Of a stretch of 64,000 bases of DNA, positions 911 to 34,960 are shown one piece after another. The stretch comes from Macrostomum lignano (Eukaryota): positions 16,852-80,851 of the forward strand of contig NIVC01003718.1 of assembly GCA_002269645.1 (NCBI GenBank), read 5' to 3'. The notes under the pieces are model-generated. The model had not been told where the DNA came from. It ran no database searches and saw only the letters and a program-made list of their open reading frames with translations. How positions within the stretch are numbered: the stretch's first letter is position 1; each line of letters begins with the position of its first letter. A program made the position numbers and the translations under genes.

Positions 911-3900
911 TCACTCAGTCGCTGTTAGCTCCAGAATGTCTTCGATCAAGAATTCAGCTTGGGCTTCAACGTCCAGGGCATCGGATTGGTCTTCGGTTGA
1001 TTCCTGTTGCTTCTGTTCCGGTGCGTCTTCGAGATTCTGATTCGCTTCATTTTTTACAGCTTCCGCTTCCGGTTCAGCAGGTTTCACTTCCGGTTCAGCT
1101 GGTTTCACTTCCGGTTCAGCTGGTTTCGCTTCCGGTTCGGCTGGTTTCGCTTCCGGTTCGGCTGGTTTCGCTTCCGGTTCAGTAGGTTTCGCTTCCGGTT
1201 CAGTAGGTTTCGCTTCCGGTTCAGCAGGTTTCACTTCCGGTTCGGCTGGTTTCGCTTCCGGTTCGGCTGGTTTCGCTTCCGGTTCAGTAGGTTTCGCTTC
1301 CGGTTCAGTAGGTTTCGCTTCCGGTTCAGCAGGTTTCACTTCCGGTTCGGCTGGTTTCGCTTCCGGTTCAGTAGGTTTCACTTCCGGTTCAGTAGGTTTC
1401 GCTTCCGGTTCAGTAGGTTTCGCTTCCGGTTCAGTAGGTTTCGCTTCCGGTTCGGCTGGTTTCGCTTCCGGTTCGGCTGGTTTCACTACCGGTTCGGCTG
1501 GTTTCACTACCGGTTCGGCTGGTTTCGCTTCCCGTTCGGCTGGTTTCGCTTCCGGTTCAGTAGGTTTCGTTTCGGGTTCAGCTGGTTTCGCTTCCGGTTC
1601 GGCTGGTTTCGCTTCCGGTTCGGCTGGTTTCGCTTCCGGTTCGGCTGGTTTCGCTTCCGGTTCAGCTGGTTTCGCTTCCGGTCCGACTGGTTTCGCTTCC
1701 GGTTCAGCTGGTTTCGCTTCCGGTTCCGATAGCTTGACTTCAGGTTCCGCCTTCTTGAATTCCTGTTCCGTCGCCACTGGCGGAGGTGGCGGCGCTTGTG
1801 GTTCGGGTGGCGGCACCTGTAGCTGAGGTGGCTGCACCTGCACCTGAGGTGGTTGCACCTGCGGCTGAGGTGGCTGCACCTGCACCTGAGGTGGCTGCAC
1901 CTGCACCTGAGGTGGCTGCACCTGCACCTGAGGTGGCTGCACCTGCACCTGAGGTAGCTGCACCTGCACCTGAGGTGGCTGCACCTGCACCTGAGGTGGC
2001 TGCACCTGCACCTGAGGTGGCTGCACCTGCACCTGAGGTGGCTGCACCTGCACCTGAGGTGGCTGCACCTGCACCTGAGGTGGCTGCACCTGCACCTGAG
2101 GTGGCTGCACCTGCACCTGAGGTGGCTGCACCTGCACCTGAGGTGGCTGCACCTGCGGCTGTGACGCCTGCACTTGTGGTGGCGGTTGAGACTGCGCCAC
2201 GCGCATCTGGTTTCCAGCATCTTCAGACACTATTTGCTGGTGCATCGCTACCTGCATCTGCTGAGGCTGGGGTTGCGATTTCTGCTGCTGTTGCAGCTGC
2301 TTGATAGGGGATTCTAGCTTTGGGACAACTTGCTGATTCTGAGCAGGCAGCTGCTGTGACGGTTGCACATGCTGTTCCTGTAGACGAACCTGCTGTTGTT
2401 GAGGATGCATTTGTTGCTTCTGAGGACGAATCTGCTGTTGCTGCTGAGGCTGCATCTGCTGTTGCTGCTGAGGCTGCATCTGCTGTTGCTGAGGCTGCAT
2501 CTGCTGTTGCTGCTGAGGCTGCATCTGCTGTTGCTGAGGACGAATCTGCTGTTGCTGCTGAGGCTGCATCTGCTGTTGCTGAGGCTGCATCTGCTGTTGC
2601 TGCTGAGGCTGCATCTGCTGTTGCTGAGGACGAATCTGCTGTTGCTGCTGAGGCTGCATCTGCTGTTGCTGCTGAGGCTGCATCTGCTGTTGCTGAGGAC
2701 AAATCTGCTGTTGCTGCTGAGGACGAATCTGCTGTTGCTGCTGAGGACGAATCTGCTGTTGCTGCTGAGGCTGCATCTGCTGTTGCTGAGGCTGCATCTG
2801 CTGTTGCTGCTGAGGACGAATCTGCTGTTGCTGCTGAGGACGAATCTGCTGTTGCTGAGGCTGCATCTGCTGTTGCTGAGGCTGCATCTGCTGTTGCTGC
2901 TGAGGACGAATCTGCTGTTGCTGCTGAGGCTGCATCTGCTGCTGCTGAGGCTGCATCTGCTGTTGCTGCTGAGGACGAATCTGCTGTTGCTGCTGAGGAC
3001 GAATCTGCTGTTGCTGCTGAGGACGAATCTGCTGTTGCTGAGGCTGCATCTGCTGTTGCCGCTGAGGACGAATCTGTTGTTGCTGCTGAGGCTGCATCTG
3101 CTGTTGCTGAGGCTGCATCTGCTGTTGCTGAGGCTGCATCTGCTGTTGCTGCTGAGGCTGCATCTGCTGTTGCTGAGGACGAATCTGCTGTTGCTGCTGA
3201 GGCTGCATCTGCTGTTGCTGAGGCTGCATCTGCTGTTGCTGAGGCTGCATCTGCTGTTGCTGCTGAGGCTGCATCTGCTGTTGCTGAGGACGAATCTGCT
3301 GTTGCTGCTGAGGCTGCATCTGCTGCTTCTGAGGCTGCTGCTGAGGCTGTTGCTGAGGCTGCTGCTGATGCTGTTGCTGAGGCTGCTGCTGAAGCTGTTG
3401 CTGATGCTGCGGAACCTGATTCTGCTGAGGTAGCCCGTGCTGCTGGGATTCCAACATTCCTGCGTAATGCCCTCCTCGCAGGTTGGCCTGCACGTTGGTG
3501 TACATCAGCTCCGCTTGCTCAACCTCGGGATCACGGAACAGCCTCGCCTTCAGATCGGACTCTGTGAAATGAAGTCGCCAGTAGTTGAACGCCAGCTTCT
3601 GCGATTAAAATATAAAAAGATGAAACATTTTCGTACCCCGTTCAACGCGCAGAATGTCGGTCACTGACGGCTTCGGTCTATTGATTTTGCTCTCCAGTTC
3701 CTCCGATCGTTCCACCTTGCGCAGCTCCAATAGTCGCTTGAAGTTGGACGCCTCTGTTAATAGGAAAACGAGGTTCTTTGCACTTTTTTGCAATTTGAGA
3801 GACGAACAAACACAGCTTTTCAGACGTATGATCATGACAAGCACATCTGCTTTTATGCAAGGGCTAAAACTTCTATGAATATCTTGCCAAAGTAAACCTG

Positions 3901-6900
3901 GGTCGGATTCCGTTAGAGCTTGTCATGCCATTCACGGCCACCGGAGGGCCATAACCCCAAGTGGTAATGTCAGGGCCGCTATGCACCCATGATGTGAGAC
4001 AAACTAACTCACTCAGTAGACACTCATTTTCATGCATTTCAGGACAGAGACTGAACAATATGATCCGAGCAACATCTCCCTGCAAGGCTGCTCACCCGGT
4101 TCCACGTGCTTCAGCTCAGGCCTAAAGTCTTCAACGGGCATGACTGTCAGAGTGGCTTCGGCGAAGATCTGGCCGAGAGGGTTGCGAGCGAGCACGCGCA
4201 ACCGAGTGTCGCCGATGTCCTTGCAGCGCAGGATCTCAAAGTAGTTGATCGAGCCATCGTGGTACACCTTGCAGTTCGAAGTCTGGAAGTTATTAAAATA
4301 TTCGTTTGCGAGTGAATGTGAAAACAAACGAAAAATGGTAAAATCTGGTAGATTTATGCGCTTGAAAAGCAGCAACATAAGCAGTGCACAGTCACTTCAA
4401 TTAAACAATAAGTTTTGCACCTGTTCTTACAGTAATTCTATACATTTTACATTTACAACATTGAGTACTATAAACGAAATTCAATTTGGGTAAGCAACTC
4501 TAACACTGAAGCACACGACTATTTGGGCGTTCTACAATTCATATCTGTGATAATAGTGCGAAAATACAATAAAGTCACCACTTAGCAAAGCGCTTTTCGC
4601 AGCTGATGGGGCAGGATGCATAATTAACAACAAAATTTGTCTAAATTTTCTTCCGTCGAACGCCTCTATTGAAGCTGAAGCTAGATTTTTTACAAAGCCG
4701 TGCGCTCCTTTTGCCGCTGCGACGCAAAAAAATCAATAGTTTATACTGACTACTAGCAGTAGATTACTCGAATGTGCACACTAATGCAATATAAGCAGCC
4801 TTACATCGCTTGTGTCAATGTTATTGCTGACACTTTCAGTTTCATTAACCTCGTCCGAGTCCTGTTAGGAAAAGTGGAGCTTGACAAGTTGGAAATGTAT
4901 TGTGTAAGTTTATATAAAAAAATTTTATTCACACGAGGTAAAATTTAAAAGCAAAGGGAAACAGAAAAGTAATTAACACGACTGTGCAATCAAATTGAGC
5001 TGATGGACTTCATCAACGGCACAACCGAGTTCAGTGACATCAAAATTGTGACAGTTTCTATCACGTCAAGACAATTGCATTGAAATCGAAACAGTTGCAT
5101 AAAAATCAAGACAGTTGCACCAATGTCAAGACAGTTGCACGAACGTCAAGACAGTTGCACCAATGTCAAGACAGTTGCACGAACGTCAAGACAGTTGCAC
5201 CAATGTCAAGACAGTTACACCAATGTCAAGACAGTTGCACCAATATCAAGACAGTTGCACCAATGTCACGACAGTTGCACGAACGTCATGACAGTTGCAC
5301 CATCAACGACACGACAGTTGCACCAACATCAAGCCAGTTGCATTAAAATGAAGACAGTTGCGCCAAAATCAAGACAGTTGCACCAACGTCAAGACAGCTG
5401 CACCAACATCAAGAAATTTGCACCGACATCAAGACCGCCACAACTTTAATCGAGCTATAAGTAACCACTTTCATCCAATAAAATTGTGACTGCGACCGTA
5501 GCTTAGAGACAGACACGGTGCCACGTGTTGGACACCTTTGCAGTCAAGACACAAGACATAAGACACAAGATAAATCGTCATCTTTACGAAACTAATGGTA
5601 CATAGTGAAAGATACAGCGGTTGCCATATTGTTTCAGATTCATCAAAGGTAAATAAGGCTGGTGATGCAGGTTAGGGTTATGGTACGGATTGTTGTTTGG
5701 TATTTCATAACGCGAACGATCATGTACATCATAGGTTTGTATTACGAGCAAAAATACATATGTAGTTTCAACTAGAAGAGCAAGACAGAAGTATCTTGTT
5801 GTGTCTCAAGCGATGAGTATAATGACAAGTAGCTATAGTATCATCTATTCAACGGTATGATAAAATCCAAGGGCTTACGGAAGCAATCATCTGCTCGTTA
5901 AGATACCAGGCCACTCGAGGCCTTGGCAAACCGCTGAGCTTCACCAGAAACTTTGCCGGATAGCCTTCGCATACGGTTACGGACTCCGGCATGATGTCGA
6001 AGTGAGGCTGAGACTGCGGCTCAACAAATTCGCGGAATTGAAACTCCTCGGGTCCGATCGGAGCCCTGGAGGTTGCGGGTGTTTCATTTAAAGTGAATTT
6101 CGAGCGCGTTTGTACAGAATTTACAGATCTTTACGAGGGGAGAAAGTCTATGCCACAGAAGAACTTTTACAATCTGAATGATTCCTACGTATTTAGACGC
6201 CAACCGAAGGACGTCCAGCAAATTTTTGGACTGTAAATTAGCCGCCCAGAAACTGTAACTCACTCTCTCCACTGTCGCTCAAGATCCTCTAGCCGTTGAA
6301 AGCCCTGTGCACCTCCGGGTAACTGCGTTCGCGTCACCACCGACTCGCTCGCGTGGCACAGTACGGCGACTCGGTTGCTTTCAACTGCGCCAGACCGATT
6401 GCGCACCACCGCCCAGTACTGGCCGGAGTCTTCGGCATAGCAGTGCCCGATCTGCAACCAGGCAAGACCCCTCTCGCAGTCGGTGTGCACCCGCGAGCCC
6501 AGCGTCACCGCTTGGCCGTCCTTCAACCAGTCGACGCTCAGGTTGCCGTCTCTGGCCGGCTCAATCTGCAGTTTTGTGAGTTTTAATTTTACCAATCTGT
6601 TTTTAGTAAAGAAAGTGAGTAAAATTTCTGTGTTTCTACTCGCGACGGTAGTCTAAGACCACGTGATAAGATGCTAAAATAAAACTATCATTAGAAGAGA
6701 TTCTACCATGGCTAAACGATAACCGAACGCTATACGCTCATTTTTCAACGCTTTGAAATCGTTATTCAAGGCTACTAAAGATACGAACACATTAATGAGC
6801 CAATGTCTGCCTCCAAAACCACAGACAAAATCTATCATTATACCATAGACGATACCATAGAACCATACCATACCATAGAACACAAAAACACCAACGATAC

Positions 6901-9900
6901 GACAGCTACTCGTAGGCATGCGTTCCTTACCGAATTCCAGCTCATTTCTAAGAAAATCGTCCTTTTTTGACACTGTCGCAAATCAAGGCGCGGAGGCAAG
7001 CAGTTTAGCCAATTACACTGACACCTGAGCATTCTCACAGGTTGTATAGTGGGCCTAAACTTCTTATCATCAGGCATGTGTACACTGTGCCTCTGTGGTC
7101 GGCCCCCATGTGGTATTACTGTAAATGCGTAAGTCAGATGAAAAGCACGTCACCGCGCTCCAAATCGACCCCGGGAATTTCGCACGATGCGTCACCGCTG
7201 CCAAAAAGTGTCAACGTCCCTTACTTAAGTAGTTGAATCCTCACCTGCAGCTGCAGACCCAATCGTTCGCCCTCCTTGAGCTCCGGCGGCTGCACCAGAC
7301 CCCTGACAATGACTGGCGGCGGTTGCTGCTGAGCATCAGCGCCAGGCATCGCGGCTCGTCCAGTCGCCATCTCCTCCTCCAGCTGCATCAGACTGCGGAT
7401 GCTGTGCTCCGCGTTGCCCGGCAACTGCGATGACGTCACCACGCCGGTGCCGCCGGGTTGGCAGACAAGTTGAGCAGCAGTGCTCTGTGCCTGGCCGTGC
7501 TCGCTCTCCAGCACGGCGCAGTACGTGCCGCTGTCCTCCGAGTTCACGTAGGCAAATTTTAGCCAAGCTAGCCCGAGTTCGAATCCTGCCGTGATTCGGG
7601 AGCCGAATTGGACCAGGACGCCGTCGCAAAACCAGTGCGCCTGCACCCGGTTACCGTTGCCGGGGTCGGCCCGGGCTGAGAACGCAGCAGGGGCCGCCGC
7701 CTCCGGCACCTGCAGCTGCGCTGGGCTTAGCGGGGCCAGGAAGCGTGGCGGGTCGGCGCGGCGAAGATCGGCGTCCATCCTGCGGGTGCGTGTTGCCAAT
7801 CGGGTGCACAAAATGTTATCTTTCACTCACCATCAGCAATTTTTTACTCATTATCTCTAGTATAGCTCATCGCTACACCCACCGATTGCTAATCGCTTCA
7901 CCCACCGATTGCTCATCGCTTCACCCACCGATTGCTCATCGCTACACCCACCGATTGCTCATCGCTGCACCCACCGATTGCTAATCGCTTCACCCACCGA
8001 TTGCTAATCGCTTCACCCACCGATTGCTAATCGCTTCACCCACCGATTGCTCATCGCTACACCCACCGATTGCTCATCGCTTCACCCACCGATTGCTCAT
8101 CGCTTCACCCACCGATTGCTCATCGCTTCACCCACCGATTGCTCATCGCTTCACCCACCGATTGCTCATCGCTTCATCCACCGATTGCTCATCGCTTCAC
8201 CCACCGATTGTTTATCGCTTCATCCACCGATTGCTCATCGCTTCACCCACCGATCGCTCGTCGCTTCACCCACCGATTGCTCATCGCTTCATCCACCGAT
8301 TGCTCATCGCTACACCCACCGATTGCTCATCGCTACACCCACCGATTGCTCATCGCTTCATCCACCGATTGCTCATCGCTACACCCACCGATTGCTCATC
8401 GCTTCACCCACCGATTGCTCATTGCTACACCCACCGATTGCTCATCGCTACACCCACCGATTGCTCATCGCTTCACCCACCTATTGCTCATCGCTACACC
8501 CACCGATCGCTCATCGCTACACCCACCGATCGCTCATCGCTACACCCACCGATCGCTCATCGCTACACCCACCGTTCATTCCCCAACCAGGGCACTCACG
8601 GTCTGAACTCTTCCCCGTACTCCTCCAGTCGTTGAATGTTCATCACCGAGCTCGCTGGCAGAGCAGATGCGGTCACCACCCCAGCAGAGCCAGAGCAGCT
8701 GTGAATGATTGTTTTTTTGAACGATTTGACTCAAGTATTCGATGTTACTGCCACTAACTCGACTCCACTCATGACTCACCTCAGCTGAGCCGTGTTGCTC
8801 TGAGCCGAGCCGTGTTTATTCGTTGCCAAGCAACAATAGAGGCCACTGTCCTCCGGGTAGCAATAGATCATCTCCAGTGCCGTGTAGCCTCTATCGTACA
8901 CTGCCCGAATTCTCGAGCCTAAAGTTACCGGGACTCCATTCTTATACCATTCCACCTGGATGTTTGAGTCCGCCGCCGGCGTCACTCGGGTCTCGAATCG
9001 TACGCTGGAGTTCTCTGCGACCACCGCGCTATCAATCTGGCGGACAAACTGAGGCGCCGATTGCGGGATTCGATCGTCATAGTCCTGGCGGGTGCTGCGG
9101 GCGCTCAGACGCTCGTCCAGACGGTCGATGTTGGCCACCATGGACTGCTCGGGCAACTGGGTGTCCGTCACAACGCCCTCCTCGGCTACGACCCTGGCAG
9201 TTTCGGTAAATTTGAGCATATTTTGAATTTCTCAGGCGTTGTGAAATCAGGGGTTTTCAGCTTGTGGATATTGGGGCCCAGGTTGTGAAAGTCAGACCTC
9301 GGCCTGGAACTCACGTCAGCGACATCGGGTTGCTCTGGTCCATACCGAAGCTGCTGCGCACCACGCAAGAGTACTCGCCGCTGTCCTCCGGGTAGGTGTG
9401 CAGGATGTCCAACGAAACGTAGCCACGTTCGAATGTCGTGTTCAATCGCGAGCCTGGGGGAGGGTCGAAGACAGACCGCCGGGTGCTTGACGGGCTGCTT
9501 ACACAATATTTAACACAACATGCGTAGGTAATGCAAGTTTTTTAAAGTCTGTCGAATATCCAATTCGAAAGTAAATCAGATGACATCAGATATGGTATTC
9601 TCTGACCACGGTCGGGTTAAGACACAAGTTCAGCAGTCATTGTCAGTCATTGTATCTTTTGTTTACTTGTCAGATGGTCTCTTCTAAATTCTATTTTGCA
9701 TCTTATAAAATAAAAAACTCCGGTCTCTCCATCCGGCCCTCAGGACGGTTGAAACATCACAATAGCAATCCTGCCATGCAGCTAAGGGTTTGTGTCTCTT
9801 CTCAGCTCCTTTCTCTCATCTCTCCTCTTTTCTCTCATCTCTCTTCCTCTATTCCCTCCTCTTTCCACTCTTATCTGGCCTAGAGCCATTCTGTGCACTA

Positions 9901-10437
9901 TTGAGAAAATTTTGCAAAATAAAAAAGGACAGGCATCGGCTCACCAGCATTGAGTGGCAGGCCGTCCTTGCACCACTCAGCCTGCATCGAGCTGTCATTC
10001 AACGGAGCCACTCGACAGTCGATTCTAACTGCGGCGCCTTCGCTTACGCTGGCAGACGGCCGCGGCTGGCGCACAAACCTGGGTGCCTCGCCAACTGCAC
10101 CTTGGCGATGCTGCTGCTGCTGCTGCTGCTGCTTCTCGTTGAAAGTAGCCGACCGACTGAGCTCGCCATTTATGTCGAATCCAGTTGGGGCCGGACTCAG
10201 CTGTTGCTGGTACTGCTGCGGCTGTTGCTGGTACTGCTGCGGCTGTTGCTGGTACTGCTGCGGCTGTTGCTGGTACTGCTGCGGCTGTTGCTGGTACTGC
10301 TGCGGCTGTTGCTGGTACTGCTGCAGCTGTTGCTGGTACTGCTGCGGCTGTTGCTGGTACTGCTGCGGCTGTTGCTGGTACTGCTGCGGCTGTTGCTGGT
10401 ACTGCTGCGGCTGTTGCTGGTACTGCGGTGACTCCAT
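911..10437 (-). CDS. Kettin/titin-like Ig-domain muscle protein, ~1707 aa, 5 Ig domains plus low-complexity tail
   Basis: Phase-consistent GT-AG exons: 10437-9945, 9453-9315, 9193-8780, 8698-8600, 7779-7245, 6565-6264, 6065-5879, 4282-4096, 3753-3637, 3561-911 (sum 5124 nt). Ig repeats carry kettin-type motifs GSR...GY/L..L.I...YPEDSG.Y.C and VVT.TQLP linkers. AATAAA on the minus strand at 770-765. Start codon uncertain (possible acceptor at 10495). Confidence 0.85.
1060..3420 (-). repeat. Coding tandem repeats of the kettin-like last exon: QQQQ(Q)MQP/IRP, PPQVQVQ (~15x), PAEPEAK (~30x)
   Basis: Visible in ORF 911..3505 and in the DNA as 21-bp and 24/27-bp periodicity. Confidence 0.95.
5075..5430. 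repeat. 20-bp intronic minisatellite (TCAAGACAGTTGCACCAATG)
   Basis: caag recurs at 5107, 5127 and 5147. Confidence 0.9.
7863..8575. repeat. 23-bp intronic minisatellite (CACCCACCGATTGCTCATCGCTT)
   Basis: Shadow ORFs are offset by 23 nt (8024, 8047, 8070). It fills most of intron 7780-8599. Confidence 0.95.
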
Positions 10438-11251
10438 GCTTGAATTGATGAAGCGCAACACCAATTTCCGGCGCAACTGTTGCTTCACGCGGATTCTGTT
10501 TTAGACCAGCTTGTCTACAGGTATACCCCGGGCAACACCCCTCCCTCAATCAGTTTCTGCCTTTCCTTTACAAAGTCTACCTGAACTGCACAGACAGCCA
10601 CGGCAGCCACATCCAGCGCCAAGGCACCATCAGCTTGATGTCATCGATCCTCGAAGCTCTGGACGCAGACTGGTGGGGGTTGGTTGGTGTTCGTTGCTTC
10701 CCTCTTCCCCCGCTGCTGGCTTTCCCTGCCCCATCCCTCAGAGCGAAGAACAGAGCCGGATTTCACTATAGACAGGACGCAACCAAACGCGGTTAGCGAA
10801 AGGTCGATCTATTGCCTGATCCTGCATGGCTGTTCTCCCTGTCCAGGCTAAAGTTCAGCGCCCGCGGAACACACGCGCAGCACACGACCCCACGTACACC
10901 ACCCCCAACCCGCCGACCGCCGATATCCCATTCAAACCTCTGGGATGGTCAGAACGGAAAGGCCAAGCGTAACTCCGCCTAAAAGCAGAGATGTTGCAGA
11001 TCCTTACGCGCAGCTCCAGCTCGCATTTGAACTTTGCATTCTTTTATTCTTGAACCGATGGCTTTTCTTGTCTATCAGGTGCTGCTTTGCCTCTTGGGGA
11101 CATCGTAAGGTTTTGTATGGCAAAAGTTCTCTGAAAAAATGATATTTTCGACTAGAAGGGCGAAAAGTTTCAACACCTTGTCCATAGAAATTTGAGTTTT
11201 GACCATGCATAATATAATACGCTCGTACTTGTACTAATATAATATATAATA

Positions 11252-11326
11252 GATTACACCTATTGTTGGGCAGACGTGCAACCGACAGCTCAGCCGCAGC
11301 TATTGCGCGGCGCATCTGAAGACTGC
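11252..11326 (-). mobile_element. 5'-truncated SINE fragment (3' end only)
   Basis: gtgcaaccgacagctcagccgcagctattgcgcggcgcatctgaag is nearly identical to 59405-59458 of the full SINE. Confidence 0.7.
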
Positions 11327-11419
11327 AATAAGGGATGCAGAATCAAGTGCATTGGAGCCCCCTACAGACTAAGAAGGTTAGTTAACAATATCCTACCTCT
11401 ATAGCTCTAGCACTCCGAG

Positions 11420-12735
11420 ATGTGATTCACAATGTGGAATCTATGATTCACGATGTGGGATCTGTTGTTCACAACGTAGAATCTTTCTTTCACAACGTGG
11501 CAGTTGTGATTCCCGATGTAGCATTTGTGATTAACTGTTTAGTATCTGTGATTCACACTGTAGTATCTGTGACTCACACGGTAGTATCTGTGATTCCCAC
11601 TGTAGTATATGTGATGCAAACTGTAGCATGTGTGATTCCCACCGTAGTATATGTGATTCCCACTGTAGAATGTTATTCCCACTGTAGTATCTGTGATTCA
11701 CATTGTAGTATCTGTGATTCCCACTGTACTATCTGTGATTCCCACTGTAGTATCTGTGATTCCCATTGTAGTATCTGTGATTCACACTGCAGTATCTGTG
11801 ATTCCCATTGTAGTATCTGTGATTCACACTGCAGTATCTGTGATTCCCATTGTAGTATCTGTGATTCCCACTGCAGTATCTGTGATTCCCACTGCAGTAT
11901 CTGTGATTCCCACTGCAGTATCTGTGATTCCCACTGCAGTATCTGTGATTCCCACTGCAGTATCTGTGATTCCCACTGCAGTATCTGTGATTCACATTGT
12001 AGTATCTGTGATTCCCACTGTACTATCTGTGATTCCCACTGTAGTATCTGTGATTCCCATTGTAGTATCTGTGATTCACACTGCAGTATCTGTGATTCCC
12101 ATTGTAGTATCTGTGATTCCCACTGCAGTATCTGTGATTCCCACTGCAGTATCTGTGATTCCCACTGTAGTATCTGTGATTCCCACTGCAGTATCTGTGA
12201 TTCCCACTGCAGTATCTGTGATTCACATTGTAGTATCTGTGATTCCCACTGTAGTATCTGTGATTCACACTTTAGTATCTGTGATTCCACTGTAGTATCT
12301 GTGATTCACACTGTAGTAACTGTGATTCACACTTTAGTATCTGTGATTCACACTTTAGTATCTGTGATTCACACTTTAGTATCTGTGATTCACACTGTAG
12401 TATCTGTGATTCACACTGTAGTATCTGTGATTCACACTTTAGTATCTGTGATTCACACTTTAGTATCTGTGATTCACACTGTAGTAACTGTGATTCACAC
12501 TTTAGTATCTGTGATTCGCACTGTAGTATCTGTGATTCACACTTTAGTATCTGTGATTCACACTGTAGTATCTGTGATTCACACTGTAGTAACTGTGATT
12601 CACACTGTAGTATCTGTGATTCACACTTTAGTATCTGTGATTCACACTTTAGTATCTGTGATTCACACTGTAGTATCTGTGATTCACACTGTAGTATCTG
12701 TGATTCACACTGTAGTATCTGTGATTCACACTTTG
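11420..12735. repeat. 21-bp minisatellite (CTGTAGTATCTGTGATTCCCA / ...CACA)
   Basis: 7-aa periodic shadow ORFs (CSICDSH). Two sub-domains: CCCA variants, then CACA variants. Confidence 0.95.
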
Positions 12736-13338
12736 GATCTAGGTTTCACACTTTATTCACGTAAAAATTTTGCTTAATAGCATATTTGTTATGATTAAAA
12801 ATTTTCACAAACGTCTTGCAATAAAAAATTTTTTTTTGCTTTCGTCAATCCTGAACAAGAAATTTTGATTGACAATCAGAAATTTCATTTCTGGTAACCT
12901 GTCTTCCCGGAAATTAACGAATTTCTGTGTCCGGAAGAGAGCCAGGAGGTCGGACCTCGGCTTGCAGTGTTGCCAGGAACAAAGGAGCAAAAATCTGACA
13001 ACTTGCATCGGAACAGCTGATAGAAAATTTCATAGTCTCATTCCGGGAAACCATCACGGTTTGCGTGTGAAAGTGACTAGATAAGGCAAAACTGCCAGTC
13101 TGTCGGTTACACCTGTCAACTTCAATTAATCAAACTGAGGATGGTAACTTTCCGCTTTGGTTATTCCTGTACCACTTTCTCTCTCCTCTCTCTCCGAGCG
13201 GTTGCCTGCAATTAGCCAAGCAAGCATTGCTCAGGTAAAAAGTAGATAAAAGTTGCCTAGAGAGGGACAGCCTGGATGCTATCCACTTTTTGGTGGTGGG
13301 TACAATATAAAACTGAAGCTGCTCAAAAAAAATACTCC

Positions 13339-13745
13339 GTGAATCTGTGAATCTCACTCTCTGTGAATCTCACTCTCTGTGAAGCTCTCTCTGTAAATCT
13401 CACTCTCTGTGAATCCCACTCTCTGTGAATCTCACTCTGTGATTCTCACTCTCTGTGATTCTTACTCTCTGTGAATCTCACTCTCTGTGAATCTCACTCT
13501 CTGTGAATCTCACTCCTATGTGAATCTCACTCTGTGAATATCACTCTCTGTGAATCTCTGAATCTCACTCTCTGTGAATCTCACTCTCTGTGAATCTCAC
13601 TCTGTGTGAATCTCACTCTCTGTGGATCTCACTCTCTGTGAATCTCACTCTCTGTGAATCTCACTCTGTGTGAATCTCACTCTCTGTGAATCTCACTCTC
13701 TGTGGATCTCACTCTCTGTGAATTTCACTCTGTGAATTTCACTCG
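13339..13745. repeat. 16-bp minisatellite (GTGAATCTCACTCTCT)
   Basis: aatc at 13561, 13577 and 13593. Confidence 0.9.
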
Positions 13746-13769
13746 TTAGAATTCATGTCACAGTTGAGG

Positions 13770-13980
13770 TCCCAGTATTTCCCAATTTCACTACTGATAT
13801 CCCAGTATTTCACAATCTCACTACTGATATCCCAGTATTTCACAATCTCACTACTGAGATCCCAGTATTTCACAATCTCACTACTGAGATCCCAGTATTT
13901 CACAATCTCACTACTGAGATCCCAGTATTTCACAATCTCACTACTGAGATCCCAGTATTTCACAATCTCACTACTGAGAA
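13770..13980. repeat. 30-bp minisatellite, ~7 copies (CCCAGTATTTCACAATCTCACTACTGAGAT)
   Basis: 10-aa periodic shadow ORFs on both strands. Confidence 0.95.
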
Positions 13981-14498
13981 TCTTCATTCCTCAAATCTCG
14001 TTCCGAAGTATTTCAATCCTCAAAATCTCGCTCTTGAGAATTGTAAACATCAAAATCCACTCCTGGAGAATATTTTTTGTTAAATCTCGTTTCTAAGAAT
14101 TGCAATCTTAAAAATATCACTCCTGAGACCCTAGCCATGTGTTCGAATCTCTAGTTAGTTCACCGCTCGGAGCTCGTTAGACACAGACTGTCCTTAGCCA
14201 ACCAACTCCCAGCCAGCATCCCAGAGTTTGAGTCGAAATTGCATCCAGCCAATACGACCGCTGCATCCCAAGGAAGGATGGGTTGACACTTGGGATAAAA
14301 CCGCGGCAATCTTCACCGAGAAGACGCTGCTTCTTCTCCTCTAAAGCCTGAAATCTTCTTGAAGACTTTCTGTTTGCAACTCTTGCAGCAAATCAATTTC
14401 AAGGTAAAAGCTTTGGTTCCTGTCATGCACTAATAGCAAGTGCATACAAAAGGTTGACTCATATACCCACCGAATTTTCAGGCAAAAACTGTCAAAGC

Positions 14499-15073
14499 AT
14501 GAAGGTCGCCGCTATGATCGCTTTCATTGCTGTAGCAGCGTTGGTCACTGTTCAGCTCACAGGTTTGTTATACACGATCGATTGTTACTCGTGTTAAAAT
14601 TGATTTGAATTTCTAAGAAACCAATCGGTTTCGTTGCATCTCAGACGCCTCCCTGGCCGAGGAGGGTCCGAACAGCCATCAGATGTTCCGCTTCAAGAAG
14701 GGATTTCACTTCTTCCGACTGCGCAAGTCTGCCGCCGCTGCCCAGGGCTGCATGATTAACGACAACGCCTTGGAAGGGATGGAGATGGTGGTTGTGAGTT
14801 AAAACTGCTTCATTTACCCTGTCAACCATTTATCAATCATAATGCAGCTTCTCGAGCGTCGTCAGAACTGTATCTATAAATCAAATTCTAAGGCTGTTTT
14901 AAAGGAACTGTCATGCCAGAGTTGTCAGACAGTAACTCTCCAGTAACTCAGTCAGTGCTAAACCGTAATCTTTCTTTTTCGTCGTTAATTTGCAGAAAGC
15001 GGCCCGTTCTGGAAAGCTGTGCAACCAGGACAAGCAGATGCTCAGGGTGTTCCTGGCCAGCTTGCTGCTGTGA
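14499..15073 (+). CDS. Secreted neuropeptide prohormone, 96 aa
   Basis: Exons 14499-14562, 14645-14793 and 14996-15073 splice in phase to MKVAAMIAFIAVAALVTVQLTDA-SLAEEGPNSHQMFRF-KK-GFHFFRL-RK-SAAAAQGCMINDNALEGMEMVVKAARSGKLCNQDKQMLRVFLASLLL*. Hydrophobic signal peptide, two dibasic sites, two Cys. Possible 5'UTR intron 14404-14481. AATAAA at 15284. Confidence 0.85.
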
Positions 15074-15494
15074 GCCGGATCCGGCGCCTACTCCTGAGGG
15101 ACCCGACTCAGTTATTAAATCATTCGGTTCTGCTGGGGTAACCATGACAGAATTGGCGCAGCCCAGCAAGACACGAATATAAAGGATTACCCTTACAATC
15201 AGTTAATACCATCTCGTGTGTCATGCTTTTAAATTGTTGACACAATTATAAACTAAACGATCATGTTTAACTAAGAGGCTTTGAATAAATCTGAAAGTCA
15301 GTAAATTTCACTAATCAGTTAATCGAGGTCGCGCGGATCCAAAAAACTGTTAATAATTGATTCAATTCCAAAAAAATCTGTTGTCTTAATATTCTTAGTT
15401 CTTTTGATAAATAGTTTGTTTTCAAAATCTATTAATTGTTAGAAAGCTTTCTATGAAAATTGTATTAATCAGACTATATTCTGAACTAAAGTTT

Positions 15495-15990
15495 AGACAG
15501 GCAGGTTCGGTGAAGACTGAAGCTTGGAAAGACAGGGTTTGTGAAGGCTGAAGCTTGGAAAGACAGACTGAAGATTTGAAAGACAGACTGAAGCTTAAAA
15601 AGACAGGATTTGTGAAGACTGAAGCTTTGAAAGACAGGATTTGTGAAGACTGAAGCTTTGAAAGACAGACTGAAGATTTGAAAGACAGACTGAAGCTTAA
15701 AAAGACAGGATTTGTGAAGACTGAAGCTTTAAAAGACAGACTGAATCTTTGAAAGACAGACTGAAGCTTAAAAAGACAGACTGAAGCTTAGAAAGACAGG
15801 ATTGGTGAAGACTGAAGCTTAGAAAGACAGGTTTGGTGAAGACTGAAGCTTAGAAAGACAGACTGAAGCTTAGAAAGACAGGATTGGTGAAGACTGAAGC
15901 TTAGAAAGACAGGTTTGGTGAAGACTGAAGCTTAGAAGGACAGACTGAAGCTTAGAAAGACAGGATTGGTGAAGACTGAAGCTTAGAAAG
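15495..15990. repeat. Mixed ~20/31-bp minisatellite (GAAGACTGAAGCTTAGAAAGACAG...)
   Basis: Recurrent gactgaagctt/gaaagacag modules. Confidence 0.85.
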
Positions 15991-16077
15991 TATTTATTTA
16001 ATTTTGAAGGCCTGTCGATATTGTTTAAACAATCTGATACTTGTTATGTCAGTCACACCCTCTTAATCTCTAATTAA

Positions 16078-17980
16078 CAGTAGGAATACCAAGCCATTTT
16101 TCCGCCCGTCGAACTACCAAGAGGGGGGGAAAAATTTCCCCCCCCCTGACAATTTTTTTTGCTGCGCCGGAACGGAGCAACGCAGGCACACGAAATTCAA
16201 GAACACGGGCTAACTTTTTGTTGCGCACCTTCTCAAACAAGAATCAAGTCGCCAGCCCTCCGGACCGTCGAGATATTCGACGATTCTTCCAGAAGGTCGG
16301 ATTTTTCCCATAAGCGCTAGTGTATTCAGTACACCCCTGTGCGCCAATTAGCACTGCGCCTCAGTGCAGCCTTGCCAAGTCTCCAAATTTCATCAGCACG
16401 TCGACCAAATGTGTCTGCATCAGCTCTGACTTCGTTGGTTACTGGCCTTCACCGAGACGGAGCTTCTAGACCTTCAACAGGTGGCACCAGGTGACTATGA
16501 ACACCTTGATGCGAATTTCTCGAGTTTCACCGATCAAGCCTCGACAGTAGGCAAGCCTCAACTGCCGGACACCCTCAGCTAGTCTCCTGAGCATTCCGTC
16601 ATCATCCCGACGCCGTCAACTCCTTCAACAGATGACACCAAGTGACTATGGACGTCCTTTTGCAACTATGTCAGGTCTTTCTTATTAAGCTTCAATAATG
16701 GGCAAACCTCAACCGACGGACATTGTCAGCTAGTCTCTCAAGCATTCCGTCATCATCCCGACGCCGTCGGCTCCTTCAACAGATGACACCAAGTGACTAT
16801 GGACACCCTGATGCGAATTTCTCTAGTTTCGCCGATCAAGCCTCGACAGTAGGCAAGCCTCAACTGCCGGACACCCTCAGCTAGTCTCCTGAGCATTCCG
16901 TCATCATCCCGACGCCGTCAACTCCTTCAACAGATGACACCAAGTGACTATGGACGTCTTTTTGCAACTATGTCAGGTCTTTCTTATTAAGCTTCAATAA
17001 TGGGCAAACCTCAACCGACGGACATTGTCAGCTAGTCTCTCGAGCATTCCGTCATCATCCCGACGCCGTCGGCTCCTTCAACAGATGACACCAAGTGACT
17101 ATGGACACCCTGATGCGAATTTCTCTAGTTTCGCCGATCAAGCCTCGACAGTTGGCAAGCCTCAACTTCTGAAAACCCTCAGCTAGTCTCTCGAGCATTC
17201 CGTCATCACACCGACACCGTCGGCACCTTCAACAGGTGGCACCAGGGGAGTAAGGACACCTGAGCGTGATTTTTCATCATGCTCTTAACATTTCTGAAGC
17301 TCTCAGATTTTTTAAGCACGAACATTGCTATAGTTAAGCTTGAACTCATGTTGCTGTATGTTTATATTATTATTACACATAATTTTATACATACGAGCTA
17401 CATAGCTACATACATATTTTATTCGAAAGATTTCCGGCCACGAATTTGTTGTGCATGTCATCAGAAAATTGAAGGATATTTGAGGATAATGAAAAACTTT
17501 GTCATTGTTCTAGGATTTCTTGCGAATGTACAGTAGTAGCTATCATGCTTTTGCGCTAATTTTCGTTTTTTTATTATAATACTAGTGGCTACCTTTACTT
17601 GATCCTTAGTTTCATTTGCGTGCCAGTAAATTCAATCGGTTTTTTTCATTTTTAAAAGCATAAACCTTTCTGCATAAAATTGGGTTCAATATTATAGTTG
17701 AATAAACTAAACAGCTTTTCGAATAAAATATGTATGTAGCTATGTAGCTCGTATGTATAAAAGTATGTGTAATAATAATATAAACATACAGCAACATGAG
17801 TTCAAGCTTAACTATAGCAATGTTCGTGCTTAAAAAATCTGAGAGCTTCAGAAATGTTAAGAGCATGATGAAAAATCACGCTCAGGTGTCCTTACTCCCA
17901 TGGTGCCACCTGTTGAAGGTGCCAACGGTGTCGGTGTGATGACGGAATGCTCGAGAGACTAGCTGAGGGTTTTCAGAAGT
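16078..17980. mobile_element. Foldback-like TTAA-flanked palindromic element, copy A (right arm runs into the gap)
   Basis: TTAA at 16074-16077, then CAGTAGGAATACCAAG. Five 151-bp units (starts 16473, 16624, 16775, 16926, 17077). Left arm ends ~17430 and the inverted arm starts ~17716. Mirror-image shadow ORFs 17279+ and 17612-. Same family as 59746-63478. Confidence 0.85.
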
Positions 17981-18827
17981 NNNNNNNNNNNNNNNNNNNN
18001 NNNNNNNNNNNNNNNNNNNNNNNNNNNNNNNNNNNNNNNNNNNNNNNNNNNNNNNNNNNNNNNNNNNNNNNNNNNNNNNNNNNNNNNNNNNNNNNNNNNN
18101 NNNNNNNNNNNNNNNNNNNNNNNNNNNNNNNNNNNNNNNNNNNNNNNNNNNNNNNNNNNNNNNNNNNNNNNNNNNNNNNNNNNNNNNNNNNNNNNNNNNN
18201 NNNNNNNNNNNNNNNNNNNNNNNNNNNNNNNNNNNNNNNNNNNNNNNNNNNNNNNNNNNNNNNNNNNNNNNNNNNNNNNNNNNNNNNNNNNNNNNNNNNN
18301 NNNNNNNNNNNNNNNNNNNNNNNNNNNNNNNNNNNNNNNNNNNNNNNNNNNNNNNNNNNNNNNNNNNNNNNNNNNNNNNNNNNNNNNNNNNNNNNNNNNN
18401 NNNNNNNNNNNNNNNNNNNNNNNNNNNNNNNNNNNNNNNNNNNNNNNNNNNNNNNNNNNNNNNNNNNNNNNNNNNNNNNNNNNNNNNNNNNNNNNNNNNN
18501 NNNNNNNNNNNNNNNNNNNNNNNNNNNNNNNNNNNNNNNNNNNNNNNNNNNNNNNNNNNNNNNNNNNNNNNNNNNNNNNNNNNNNNNNNNNNNNNNNNNN
18601 NNNNNNNNNNNNNNNNNNNNNNNNNNNNNNNNNNNNNNNNNNNNNNNNNNNNNNNNNNNNNNNNNNNNNNNNNNNNNNNNNNNNNNNNNNNNNNNNNNNN
18701 NNNNNNNNNNNNNNNNNNNNNNNNNNNNNNNNNNNNNNNNNNNNNNNNNNNNNNNNNNNNNNNNNNNNNNNNNNNNNNNNNNNNNNNNNNNNNNNNNNNN
18801 NNNNNNNNNNNNNNNNNNNNNNNNNNN
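17981..18827. other. Assembly gap (847 N)
   Basis: Run of n. Confidence 1.
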
Positions 18828-19288
18828 TTGGCTAGGGTTTGGCTAGGGTTTGGTTAGGGTTTGGCTAGGGTTTGCTAGGGTTTGGTTAGGTTTGGTTAGG
18901 GTTTGGTTAGGGTTTGGATAGGTTTCGGTTAGGGTTTGGTTAGGGTTCGGTTAGGTTTTGGTTAGGGTTCGGTTAGGGTTTGGTTAGGGTTTGGTTAGGG
19001 TTTGGTTAGGGTTTGGTTAGGGTTTGGTTAGGATTTGGTTAGGATTTAGTTAGAGTTTGGTTAGGGTTTGGTTAGGGTTCGGTTAGGGTTTGGTTAGGGT
19101 TTGGTTAGGGTTTGGTTAGGGTTAGGGTTAAGGTTTGGTTAGGGTTTGGTTAGGGTTTGGTTAGGGTTTGGTTAGGGTTTTGTTAGGATTTGGTTAGGAT
19201 TTAGTTAGAGTTTGGTTAGGGTTTGGTTAGGGTTTGGTTAGGGTTTTGTTAGGGTTTGGTTAGGGTTTGGTTAGGGTTTGGTTAGGGT
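18828..19288 (+). repeat. Telomere-like 11-bp array (TTAGGGTTTGG)n, ~40 units
   Basis: Read directly. Contains TTAGGG in most units, with degenerate variants. Confidence 0.95.
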
Positions 19289-20019
19289 CAAACTGGGCCA
19301 GTTAACAGCCGGAGACTCTATAGTTTTTTACTATTAAAGACCCCTTCAGCTTAGTTTTGAAAGAAATACTTTTTTATATTAATGAATTTTTTTCAAATTT
19401 ATTGATGAAAAACTGCAATGCAGGCAAAATAAGAATATTCATATTTTTTCTGGCAAATTTATGGCCTAAAATTTATTATCCTCACTGGGTAAGGTAATAT
19501 GATTATAACTCATGACAGACGATTCGCCACTATGAAATATGCTCATATCTAAGCTCTAGTTAGTTTTTCTTTTTGCATAAAAGACATGCACGGCGATCCA
19601 ACATTAGCCTAATAATTGCTTGACCAAATTCAATGAAGTCCTGAGTTGAACTCAAGCTTGTTTGCGAATGTGCTTTTCAAGGAAAAACAGAGAGGGTTAT
19701 TATAATAGCTGGCTAATCGAAATTCAGCAGGTAAAAACGGATTAAGAGAAATTTTTATTTTTAGATGAATTGTCGGCTAATGCATTTCGCTTCCGTACCT
19801 GACAGAACCAAAAGGACTGTAGACCTCTGCTGGTGCTAATGCACTCCCATGAGAGCCAGTTATTTGCACGGGTAGTGCCATGCATTACAGCTGCAAGGAA
19901 AATACGACAGGGTCAAAATAAGACTTTGAACAGTTAGAAGAAAGGTTTGGGGACTTCTGCGTGTCTTCTAAGGGAAGTTGCCAGGATTTTTGAGGGGTAC
20001 CAGGCCGGGCTTTTGCACC

Positions 20020-20520
20020 AGAGGCTTCAGCACCAGGGCGCCAGCACCAGGGGTGCCAGCACCAGGGGCGCCAGCACCAGGGGCGCCAGCACCAGGGGCG
20101 CCAGCACCAGGGGCGCCAGCACCAGGGGCGCCAGCACCAGGGGCGCCAGCACCAGGGGCGCCAGCACCAGGGGCGCCAGCACCAGGGGCGCCAGCACCAG
20201 AGGCGCCAGCACCAGGGCGCTAGCACCAGGGGCTCCAGCAACAGGGGCACCAGCAACAGGGGCGCCAGCAACAGGCCGTTTAGCATTATGGCCGGGGGCT
20301 TTAGCACCCAGAGGCTTTAGGTTTAGCACGTAGAGGCTTTAGGTTTAGCACCCAGAGGCTTTAGTTTTAGCACCCAGAGATTTTAGGTTTAGCACCATAG
20401 GGGGCTTTTGGGTAGCACTAGGGGCTTTGGGTTTAGCACCAGGGGCTTTGGGTTTAGCACTAGGGGCTTTGGGTTTAACACCAGGGGCTTTAGCACCTGC
20501 AGCTAGGGGGCGCCAGCACC
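20020..20520. repeat. GC-rich 15-bp (GGGGCGCCAGCACCA) and related ~21-bp repeats
   Basis: 5-aa periodic shadow ORFs on both strands. Confidence 0.9.
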
Positions 20521-21472
20521 AGGGGCTGAGCCCAGCTTTTCTCCAATCGGCAAGCAATAAAAGTTTAGATTTAAATTGCACCCTTTGCAGCAGCTTTTGA
20601 CACTCAATCAATAACGCAGCTGGTGATGCATGGTGGCGTTTTTAAATAAAAGGGTGCCTTTCAATTAATGTTATGCTCTCCAGTACTTCCTTGTACACGT
20701 ATAATTAGAGGATCTAGCTCGATCTTCTCTCCCAAGAAAACTAGTTTTATTTACCAACTGGATGATATTCGAGACCTAAAATATAAACTGCAGTATTCTG
20801 AATGAATTTACATGTAAAATTAAAGGTAATACTGTGCTGTGCTATTTTATATTCCTTTCTTGGGTTGGTTCCTCTAGCTTGAAATTTGATATTCAGACAG
20901 AACACTTAATTCACCCGCATGATGGAACTTAATTTCCTACAACTGAGTAATGGTATAGTCCATGATCTTTTCATCGGTATTTAAAGCGCCGTGTTGAATT
21001 ATAAAAGTTTAAAGTAGATTCTTAAACTTCCAGCTTTTGAAAAATTAGTAGTTTTATCAGGCTTGGAAGTCTAAACTTTGTGAAGCTATTAGTAGGAGCT
21101 ACATGTACATTTAAATACGACACATAGAAATTTACATCTATGATCTATATGATTCCACATCGCTCGCAATTGATAAAATTTTGAGCTTATACTGTCTCAT
21201 ATATTTAATGAAAAAGCTAACTCTAGTTTGTTCTATTTTAATTTCTACGCAAGTATGCACTTTTGTTAAAGTGAGTCTTAAGGAGCAAAATTAAATGGGT
21301 AAAGTTCCTTCGAAACAATGTAAATAGTATTTTTAGACTTCACTGATTTCACTCTACTCTACTCCATTTCATCCATCACAGTTAATCGATATGAAACTGT
21401 CGATATAGTAAGCGGTTATCCATATGATATCTAAAAGTATTTGACGATGTATTATTAGCACAATCATTCCCG

Positions 21473-34100: not shown

Positions 34101-34960
34101 ATATCCTAAGAATCGGACACAATATCCTAAGAATCGCACACAATATCATAAGAATCGCACACAATATCCTAAGAATCGCACACAATATCATAAGAATCGC
34201 ACACAATATCCTAAGAATCGGACACAATATCCTAAGAATCAGACACAATATCCTAAGAATCGCACACAATATCATAAGAATCGCACACAATATCCTAAGA
34301 ATCGCACACAATATCATAAGAATCGCACACAATATCCTAAGAATCGCATACAATATCCTAAGAATCGGACACAATATCCTAAAAATCGGACACAATATCC
34401 TAAAAATCGGACACAATATCCTAAGAATCGCACACAATATCCTAAGAATCGCATACAATATCCTAAGAATCGTCCACAATATGCTGAGAGTTGCACACAA
34501 TATCCTAAGAATCGCCCACAATATCATAAGAATCGGACACAATATGCTGAGAGTTGCACACAATATCCTAAGAATCGCCCACAATATCATAAGAATCGGA
34601 CACAATATGCTGAGAGTTGCACACAATATCCTAAGAATCGCACACAATATCCTAAGAATCGGACACAATATCCTAAGAATTGGACACAATATCCTAAGAA
34701 TCGCATACAATATCCTAAGAATCGTCCACAATATGCTGAGAGTTGCACACAATATCCTAAGAATCGCCCACAATATCATAAGAATCGGACACAATATGCT
34801 GAGAGTTGCACACAATATCCTAAGAATCGCCCACAATATCATAAGAATCGGACACAATATCCTAAGAATCGGACACAATATCCTAAGAATCGCACACAAT
34901 ATCCTAAGAATCGCACATAATATCATATGAATCGCACACAATATCCTAAGGATCACATAC
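31150..34960. repeat. 3.8-kb 21-bp minisatellite (TAAGAATCGCACACAATATCC), ~180 units with higher-order structure
   Basis: 7-aa periodic shadow ORFs. Variant cassettes recur (ataatatcatatgaatc near 32418, 33615, 34917). Confidence 0.97.

Follow-up and report, generated by a model that had tools for sequence, protein, structure and literature searches.

A probable GnRH-less member of the flatworm FRL-containing prohormone family in Macrostomum lignano

The gene and its predicted products

We analysed a 64,000-nucleotide stretch of the genome of the flatworm Macrostomum lignano (assembly GCA_002269645.1, contig NIVC01003718.1, positions 16,852 to 80,851 of the forward strand), hereafter the window, in whose numbering positions are given unless stated otherwise. 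At 14499-15073 on the plus strand lies a three-exon gene, Mlig024884, whose 96-residue product is most probably a secretory prohormone related to the precursors of gonadotropin-releasing hormone (GnRH)-like peptides. Direct reading of the sequence matched, base for base, the first-pass annotation of this interval, which had proposed three exons spliced in phase; its coordinates, phases, peptides and 47-residue tail with two cysteines were all right. Unspliced, the interval contains stop codons in every frame, and the spliced coding sequence (CDS) is 291 nucleotides (nt) long, that is, 96 codons and a stop, with the product MKVAAMIAFIAVAALVTVQLTDASLAEEGPNSHQMFRFKKGFHFFRLRKSAAAAQGCMINDNALEGMEMVVKAARSGKLCNQDKQMLRVFLASLLL. 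The gene is built as follows (a caret marks a splice junction or a cleavage site, here and below):

14481..14498, plus strand: 5′ untranslated segment, between a splice acceptor (ttttcag^, 14474-14480) and the ATG; identical in 3/3 genomic copies
14499-14562, plus strand: exon 1, 64 nt, with the ATG at 14499 and the end ...CTCACAG^gtttgt
14563-14644, plus strand: intron 1, 82 nt, GT...AG, phase 1, end ...tctcag^
14645-14793, plus strand: exon 2, 149 nt, end ...GTGGTT^gtgagt
14794-14995, plus strand: intron 2, 202 nt, GTGAGT...TTGCAG, phase 0
14996-15073, plus strand: exon 3, 78 nt, Lys72-Leu96, with the TGA stop at 15071-15073
15114..15119, plus strand: candidate polyadenylation signal 1, ATTAAA, found by sequence and conserved in three copies
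15284..15289, plus strand: candidate polyadenylation signal 2, AATAAA, found by sequence and conserved in three copies

The acceptor before 14481 may take a cis-spliced 5′ exon or a spliced leader; trans-splicing affects 38.8% of M. lignano genes (PMC5730564). Exon 1 encodes Met1-Thr21 and the first base of Asp22, covering the n- and h-regions of the signal peptide (MK followed by VAAMIAFIAVAALVTV), and exon 3 carries the invariant Cys80 (15020-15022), Asp83 and the family motif LC..D[KR]..L...L.

The gene had been described as hidden, a term that applies only to a prokaryote-style list of open reading frames (ORFs), from which it is missing. By exact look-up, the same 96-residue protein is present in GenBank as PAA50095.1 / PAA92253.1, “hypothetical protein BOX15_Mlig024884g3/g2”, and a third copy, PAA71544.1 (Mlig024884g1), differs at three residues. 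A protein search with the product gave a single cluster, which is from M. lignano, and window positions 8499-21073 match the contig exactly. Transcript evidence already underlies the exon junctions, as the Mlig_3_7 annotation draws on RNA sequencing (RNA-seq) and on the mapping of a transcriptome assembled de novo (Wudarski et al. 2017, PMC5730564). A Pfam scan of the protein and its UniProt twin returned zero families even at E = 10. “CBP domain-containing protein” and “Venom peptide”, the names given in UniProt, were rejected as leads, being uninformative automatic labels; near-identical copies and paralogues bear the unrelated names GMC_OxRdtase_N, BofC_C, ERp29 and phosphagen kinase, several of them on over-long old models. 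One such model, the 619-residue A0A1I8GY11, supplied a candidate 5′ exon (10743-10791, spliced to 14481) that we did not rely on:

4088-10793 and 14481-15070, plus strand: A0A1I8GY11, an old fused model with the junction 10791->14481 onto the prohormone CDS

The remainder of A0A1I8GY11 is, by tblastn, the plus-strand translation of exons of a minus-strand Ig-domain gene. It is a fused or mis-stranded model, and its UniProt name, GMC_OxRdtase_N domain, is meaningless at the prohormone locus.

The 96 residues read MKVAAMIAFIAVAALVTVQLTDA^SLAEEGPNSHQMFRF-KK-GFHFFRL-RK-SAAAAQGCMINDNALEGMEMVVKAARSGKLCNQDKQMLRVFLASLLL. The signal peptide consists of MK, a 16-residue hydrophobic core and QLTDA^S, the mean Kyte-Doolittle value over residues 3-18 being 2.77. 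Exon 2 holds the modules that follow:

14645..14649, plus strand: signal-peptide end Asp22-Ala23; predicted cleavage TDA^S by the -3/-1 rule (Thr at -3, Ala at -1)
14650..14694, plus strand: peptide 1, SLAEEGPNSHQMFRF; 15 residues, predicted free C-terminus, M 1748.794
14695..14700, plus strand: dibasic site Lys39-Lys40; Lys39 is invariant in the family alignments
14701..14721, plus strand: peptide 2, GFHFFRL; 7 residues, predicted free C-terminus, M 922.481, MH+ 923.489; the signature heptapeptide of the family
14722..14727, plus strand: dibasic site Arg48-Lys49; the same RK follows GYHFFRL in Schmidtea mediterranea (Smed) spp-19, where mass spectrometry (MS) showed cleavage
14728..14793, plus strand: first part of the associated peptide, Ser50-Val71, including the invariant Cys57 (14749-14751)

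The tail comprises 47 residues with Cys57 and Cys80 (...KLC), and neither short peptide has a glycine before its basic pair. An AlphaFold2 model built on the family alignment gave a signal helix (2-24), a disordered stretch over both peptides, and two tail helices (61-76 and 81-95) joined by a turn, with a predicted local distance difference test score (pLDDT) of ~78 for residues 61-95 and a mean of 65 for the whole model. In this model Cys57 stands just before the first tail helix and Cys80 in the turn.

Membership in the FRL-containing family

Several lines of evidence place the protein in the flatworm family of prohormones with peptides ending in FRL, as a GnRH-less paralogue of a GnRH-like precursor; we put the probability of this reading at roughly 87%. 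A hidden Markov model (HMM) built from 14 non-Macrostomum sequences recognized it with 43.0 bits (E 2.9e-6 at Z = 1.84e9) and, when the signal peptide was removed, with 36.0 bits, whereas 1000 shuffled versions of the mature part scored 10.5 bits at best. A profile of six members retrieved Smed grh-1 (6e-31), spp-19 (6e-23), spp-18 and many schistosome (npp-28) proteins, all within 1e-19 to 1e-31, and BLASTP against spp-19 gave 1e-11 with 31% identity over 90 residues. The family signature, [GA][YF]H[FY]FRL between dibasic sites with no glycine donor, is present as KK-GFHFFRL-RK at 14695-14727, and K39, F45, R46, L47, C57, C80 and D83 are invariant columns among 13 members. The earlier proposal of a secretory prohormone with peptides flanked by dibasic sites is supported.

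Searching 1.84 billion representative proteins with the 13-member profile produced 20 matches at E <= 1e-3. All matches with an established organism are flatworms; a weak match, P0029 (925 residues, 11 stretches, E 1.5e-4), stands outside that count. The members recovered are:

M. lignano: five gene clusters, namely 008027 with a GnRH-like peptide and 024884, 013730, 034597 and 016149/021558 without one
Other free-living flatworms: the polyclad Stylochoplana pusilla; Schmidtea
Trematodes: Schistosoma, Heterobilharzia, Trichobilharzia, Fasciola, Fasciolopsis, Opisthorchis, Paragonimus, Calicophoron
Cestodes: Spirometra, Sparganum

Equivalent genes without a GnRH-like peptide are kept in lineages from Macrostomorpha through trematodes and cestodes. 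Mlig024884, Mlig008027, Mlig034597, Mlig013730 and a Schistosoma npp-28 locus have in common a phase-1 intron followed by one of phase 0; the position of intron 2 (V^[KR]-A-A...LC) is identical in three M. lignano paralogues and lies within one aligned residue of it in Schistosoma npp-28. Over the shared region, identity to Mlig024884 is 43-48% for the M. lignano paralogues and 21-38% for planarian, polyclad and parasite members. In a neighbour-joining tree of about 60 aligned positions the M. lignano paralogues group loosely, and the grouping together with the identities hints at a lineage-specific expansion, with which both are compatible. These ~60 positions are too few to choose between orthology to spp-19 and an independent loss of the GnRH module.

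Among the closest known parallels is planarian spp-19 (E3T7U8). Both proteins have a signal peptide, ...HQ[IM]FR[LF], a dibasic site, G[YF]HFFRL, RK and a two-cysteine tail ending ...LASLL, and a GnRH-like peptide is absent from both; the spp-19 products are non-amidated, as is predicted for those of Mlig024884. They differ in that spp-19 has a KR upstream of its first peptide (KHIGHQIFRL), whereas peptide 1 of Mlig024884 starts at the signal-peptide cleavage site, in the residue at position 2 of the heptapeptide (Tyr in spp-19, Phe in Mlig024884), and in a four-residue Ala-rich insertion that Mlig024884 carries before its first cysteine. Schistosoma npp-28 (Smp_043650) and Smed-spp-18 share [AG]YHFFRL between dibasic sites, the two-cysteine tail and intron phases 1 and 0, but lack an HQxFRL-type first peptide and have shorter tails (29-33% identity over the shared region). 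Within M. lignano, Mlig013730, Mlig034597 and Mlig016149/021558 have the same architecture and 43-47% identity to Mlig024884 in the region they share, with the same introns in Mlig013730 and Mlig034597, whose loci we read, and Mlig034597 has the same GFHFFRL and a first peptide ending in -RF. The paralogues differ in their first peptides (…GHSGHQIFRL, …SRHEPVRF and AGYESFRL), and Mlig016149 has lost the second cysteine.

Published work on planarians supplies peptide-level evidence for the family. Collins et al. 2010 (PMC2953531) confirmed GYHFFRL of S. mediterranea spp-18 and spp-19 by tandem MS, listed AYHFFRL as a predicted peptide of Schistosoma npp-28, gave spp-19 in their Table S5 as ...KR-KHIGHQIFRL-KR-GYHFFRL-RK-DEKC...NLCGSDKSFLAELASLL, and used the label FRL-containing for a group that includes spp-18, spp-19 and grh-1 (gonadotropin releasing hormone like-1). 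The first-pass annotation was right in naming -HFFRL peptides among planarian prohormones, and npp-28 of Schistosoma is predicted to have one too; the annotation's suggestion of a possibly uncharacterised signalling system does not hold as to the peptides, which planarian peptidomics has known since 2010. Cleavage was seen at KR.GYHFFRL.KK and KR.GYHFFRL.RK (PMC2953531), and by our recomputation the observed masses of KHIGHQIFRL (1247.73) and GYHFFRL (938.48) are those of the free acids. This agrees with the earlier prediction that the short peptides are not amidated, and the M. lignano peptides would, by analogy, be non-amidated as well. Peptide 1 is, by alignment, the homologue of planarian KHIGHQIFRL / YHTGHQMFRL, and it does not have the form of an RFamide precursor peptide: its ...MFRF is followed by KK with no glycine, and the orthologous planarian peptide has a free-acid mass.

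In planarians spp-18 is expressed in the cephalic ganglia, and also in unidentified sub-epidermal cells (PMC2953531); Cowles et al. 2014 (PMC4214590) found both spp-18 and spp-19 to be markers of discrete neuron populations that depend on COE. Neither is listed in the planarian pc2 RNA interference table (pc2(RNAi)), which is hence silent on the acting convertase. We found no literature naming the M. lignano members; an earlier mention in Koziol et al. 2016 is possible.

Relation to GnRH-like precursors and competing explanations

The relation to GnRH-like precursors is best seen when the modules are set out side by side:

Smed grh-1: signal peptide - QSYHFSNDWLPG-KR - YHTGHQMFRL-KK - GFHYFRL-KK - two-Cys tail
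M. lignano Mlig008027: ...CAFA^QQFHFSHGVNGWKPG-KR-GLAEEGHAGHQIFRL-KK-GYHFFRL-KK-DQEC...SLCPADRQVISAFVQNL
Stylochoplana pusilla gonadotropin-releasing hormone-2: QNMHFSNGWQPG-KR...-THDFFRV-RR-VYHFFRL-RK-...C...C
Mlig024884: signal peptide - SLAEEGPNSHQMFRF-KK - GFHFFRL-RK - two-Cys tail

In grh-1, Mlig008027 and S. pusilla GnRH-2 alike, a Q.[YFM]HFS..W.PG peptide stands upstream of the FRL peptides and the cysteine-containing tail. The associated peptide of Mlig024884 is homologous to that of all three of these accepted GnRH-like precursors. Against Mlig008027, BLASTP gave 6e-21 with 47% identity over 70 residues, and the two share an LAEEG spacer. The coding exons of Mlig008027 measure 97, 152 and 72 nt, compared with 64, 149 and 78 in Mlig024884; both genes have a phase-1 and then a phase-0 intron, the latter at exactly the equivalent site (DIV^KSAQSGSLC in Mlig008027, MVV^KAARSGKLC in Mlig024884). 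Intron 1 of Mlig008027 splits its GnRH-like peptide (QQFHFSHGVNG ^ WKPGKR), whereas exon 1 of Mlig024884 ends with the signal peptide and exon 2 opens with (D)AS-LAEEG, the GnRH module being absent. Judged from these alignments, the homology of the associated region shows paralogy rather than membership among the GnRH/corazonin-type precursors, and Mlig024884 appears to be a gene that kept everything except the GnRH-like peptide and lost that peptide.

Mlig008027 has two peculiarities of its own. Its GnRH-like peptide, QQFHFSHGVNGWKPG, is unusually long, with 15 residues against 12 in the planarian and polyclad members. At its locus (NIVC01000001.1, locus piece 4106-4877) the end of exon 1, GGAGTTAACG^GTAA, recurs within intron 1 as ...cag^GAGTTAACG^gtaaaac, at about 4330-4345 and between an AG and a GT, which might represent either a micro-exon of 9 nt or a duplication of the donor region.

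Comparison of the genomic copies bears on whether Mlig024884 is functional. Mlig024884 in the window and its copy on NIVC01000059.1 are identical at 291/291 CDS positions and differ at 80/1449 aligned non-coding positions (upstream 36/599, intron 1 1/82, intron 2 5/191, downstream 38/577), so that 0/291 coding differences are observed where ~16 would be expected at 5.5% divergence. ORFs and splice sites are intact in all three Mlig_3_7 copies, whose CDSs share at least 98% identity. The g1 copy carries A14V in the signal peptide, A26V at residue 3 of peptide 1, A52D in the tail and two synonymous changes, and these substitutions spare the FRL cores (HQMFRF, GFHFFRL), the dibasic sites and the cysteines. 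Its pattern is a mosaic, 600/600 identical upstream and then 6 differences in the CDS, and for this reason we conclude that the copies exchange sequence. Against Mlig008027, the Nei-Gojobori ratio of non-synonymous to synonymous divergence (dN/dS) is 0.19 in the peptide block (25 codons) and 0.84 in the tail (40 codons), figures that rest on these 25 + 40 codons with a dS near 1, close to saturation. A constrained peptide block with a looser tail is the pattern expected of a neuropeptide precursor.

These data can be read in other ways. Mlig024884 might be a decaying, functionless GnRH-like duplicate that lost its active peptide and was kept only through recent genome duplication: the GnRH module is indeed missing, the DV1 genome of M. 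lignano is recently duplicated and highly redundant (180 Mb in blocks >=95% identical; PMC5730564), and the tail evolves near-neutrally. In addition, the UniProt copy A0A1I8F7C4 (P0001), 95% identical, has GFHFFDCASAAAAA in place of GFHFFRLRKSAAAA (window 14716-14733), a change that fits the loss of one nucleotide and the gain of another 11 nt away and that would destroy the RL-RK site. This frameshift, however, is probably an error of the older, indel-prone ML2-based proteome, not a real allele. Three intact copies without a coding difference between two that diverge by about 5.5% in non-coding sequence, the low dN/dS of the peptide block, and the retention of GnRH-less genes from Macrostomorpha to trematodes and cestodes, with MS-detected peptides from the planarian ones, all speak against decay, and we regard it as very unlikely. 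We think equally little of the idea that the protein is a secreted non-neuronal precursor, for example of a gland secretion or of a host-defence peptide of cationic, aromatic character. The stretch FRFKKGFHFFRLRK has a positive charge and many Phe and His residues, as some antimicrobial peptides are known to have, one copy is automatically named Venom peptide in UniProt, and spp-18 was seen in sub-epidermal cells too; yet the dibasic sites would split the cationic stretch, planarian MS detects exactly such short pieces, the orthologues mark neurons (PMC4214590), and the automatic names contradict one another, with no Pfam domain found behind them.

More improbable still is that Mlig024884 is a bona fide GnRH/corazonin-type precursor in which GFHFFRL or HQMFRF is a divergent GnRH-like peptide. 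It has the layout that GnRH, adipokinetic hormone (AKH) and corazonin precursors share (signal peptide, short peptide, cysteine-containing associated peptide) and shows homology with Smed grh-1 and Mlig008027. True GnRH-like precursors of flatworms, however, carry their GnRH-type peptide (QSYHFSNDWLPG, QQFHFSHGVNGWKPG, QNMHFSNGWQPG) as a module of its own, ahead of the FRL peptides. Directly after the Mlig024884 signal peptide there is no pyroglutamate-initiated peptide of the form pGlu-...-W-x-P-Gly(amide); SLAEEGPNS... stands there instead, and this abutting SLAEEG aligns with the Mlig008027 residues that follow the GnRH-KR site. The N-terminal Gln and the Gly amidation donor are both absent, and a regular-expression search for the GnRH-like motif Q.[YF]HF[ST]..W gave zero matches in the six frames of the 64-kb window; a similar search for further FRL-type peptides, in the same frames, returned the known site only. 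Rather than being a divergent GnRH, GFHFFRL comes from the GnRH-associated region, as does the other short peptide. The link to GnRH-type precursors drawn in the first-pass annotation was thus sound in so far as it pointed to a real paralogy, whereas the correspondence it saw between FHF and the YHF of GnRH-like peptides does not stand, as GFHFFRL lies in the associated region.

Several points nevertheless weigh against the reading that we favour. Peptide 1 ends in -FRF where the family has -FRL and has no basic site upstream, which makes its bioactive form uncertain. The pairs KK and RK are weaker convertase sites than KR or RR. Gene conversion, rather than selection, may partly explain the CDS identity between copies, and the dN/dS contrast is subject to the small codon numbers and near-saturation given above. 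Our literature searches found no receptor for any FRL peptide; a 2026 review mentions unpublished polyclad GnRH/corazonin receptors. Processing and neuronal expression in M. lignano are extrapolated from planarians.

If the planarian data carry over, the Mlig024884 product would be processed as follows. The signal peptide would be removed after Ala23; a prohormone convertase would cut at Lys39-Lys40 and Arg48-Lys49, and a carboxypeptidase would trim the basic residues. The predicted products are SLAEEGPNSHQMFRF and GFHFFRL, both non-amidated, and a 47-residue helical-hairpin peptide with a probable Cys57-Cys80 disulfide, for which the computed M with one disulfide is 5006.51. Neurons would then release the short peptides to act on a putative receptor. 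As to origin, the gene would be a paralogue of a flatworm GnRH-like precursor that kept the peptides of the associated region and lost the GnRH-like peptide, and we infer from this loss that cells can produce and secrete FRL peptides in the absence of GnRH.

Both the gene and its peptide family were in public data already, and our result is mostly confirmation. New here are the family assignment of Mlig024884, the shared introns, its GnRH-less relation to Mlig008027, and the presence of at least five gene clusters of the family in M. lignano. The assignment gives a function-level annotation to a GenBank hypothetical protein with three copies in a transgenic flatworm model, and it allows one species with a tractable genome to tie the spp-18, spp-19 and npp-28 peptides to a GnRH-like precursor as its GnRH-less relatives. 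Conservation of the FRL peptides extends to schistosomes, to liver and lung flukes and to tapeworms, and zero non-flatworm matches were found among the organism-identified hits; with such flatworm-wide conservation and no match outside, an FRL receptor is a reasonable candidate for basic flatworm neuroendocrinology. More tentatively, the FRL peptides (HQxFR[LF] and G[YF]HFFRL) could make up a hormone system that is specific to flatworms, has a receptor of its own and arose in the GnRH-associated region; Macrostomum would have uncoupled these peptides from GnRH independently of planarians and parasites. We consider this possible, though less likely than not. Under such a scenario there may have been at least four duplications that each deleted the GnRH module, or a single deletion followed by further duplication, and Mlig024884 would be a snapshot of a hormone-precursor spacer turning into a new hormone gene family.

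Surroundings of the gene in the window

Head-to-head with the prohormone gene, and ~4 kb from it, lies a large minus-strand gene (911-10488). It has immunoglobulin I-set domains in the ORFs 8776-9219 and 6260-6595 (Pfam 2e-14 and 6e-8) and very long exons rich in Gln and Pro or made of PEAKPAE-type repeats, such as an 864-residue ORF at 911-3505, and it resembles a titin/PEVK-type muscle protein gene.

Tandem repeats are abundant in the window, with 43 rows at score >= 200 in the output of Tandem Repeats Finder (TRF). Minisatellites lie at 11421-12732, 13344-13979, 15510-15990 and elsewhere, among them arrays on either side of the prohormone gene and, at 31167-34963, a 21-nt unit repeated ~181 times (3.8 kb); the minisatellites account for most long spurious ORFs in the list. 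A 151-bp tandem repeat family occurs at 16471-17244 and 60110-61069 in plus orientation and, inverted, at 61859-63086. An assembly gap (a run of N at 17981-18827) is followed at 18828-19288 by 42 copies of the 11-nt unit TTGGTTAGGGT, which contains the telomere-type motif TTAGGG.

Three further coding segments, all on the plus strand, were recognized. Two long exons at 37320-37862 and 38513-38986 together span nearly all of the Pfam G-protein beta WD40 model (positions 6-339 of 340; 6.6e-47 and 1.9e-54) and belong to a heterotrimeric G-protein beta-subunit gene. At 43464-46331 an uninterrupted ORF of 955 residues has endonuclease/exonuclease/phosphatase and reverse transcriptase domains, which identify it as ORF2 of a retrotransposon without long terminal repeats (non-LTR); the G+C content of this block is 64.6%, against about 42-46% nearby. 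Finally, an ORF segment at 55732-56100 matches the C2 domain (1.7e-5) and probably represents an exon of a gene of the synaptotagmin or C2 type.

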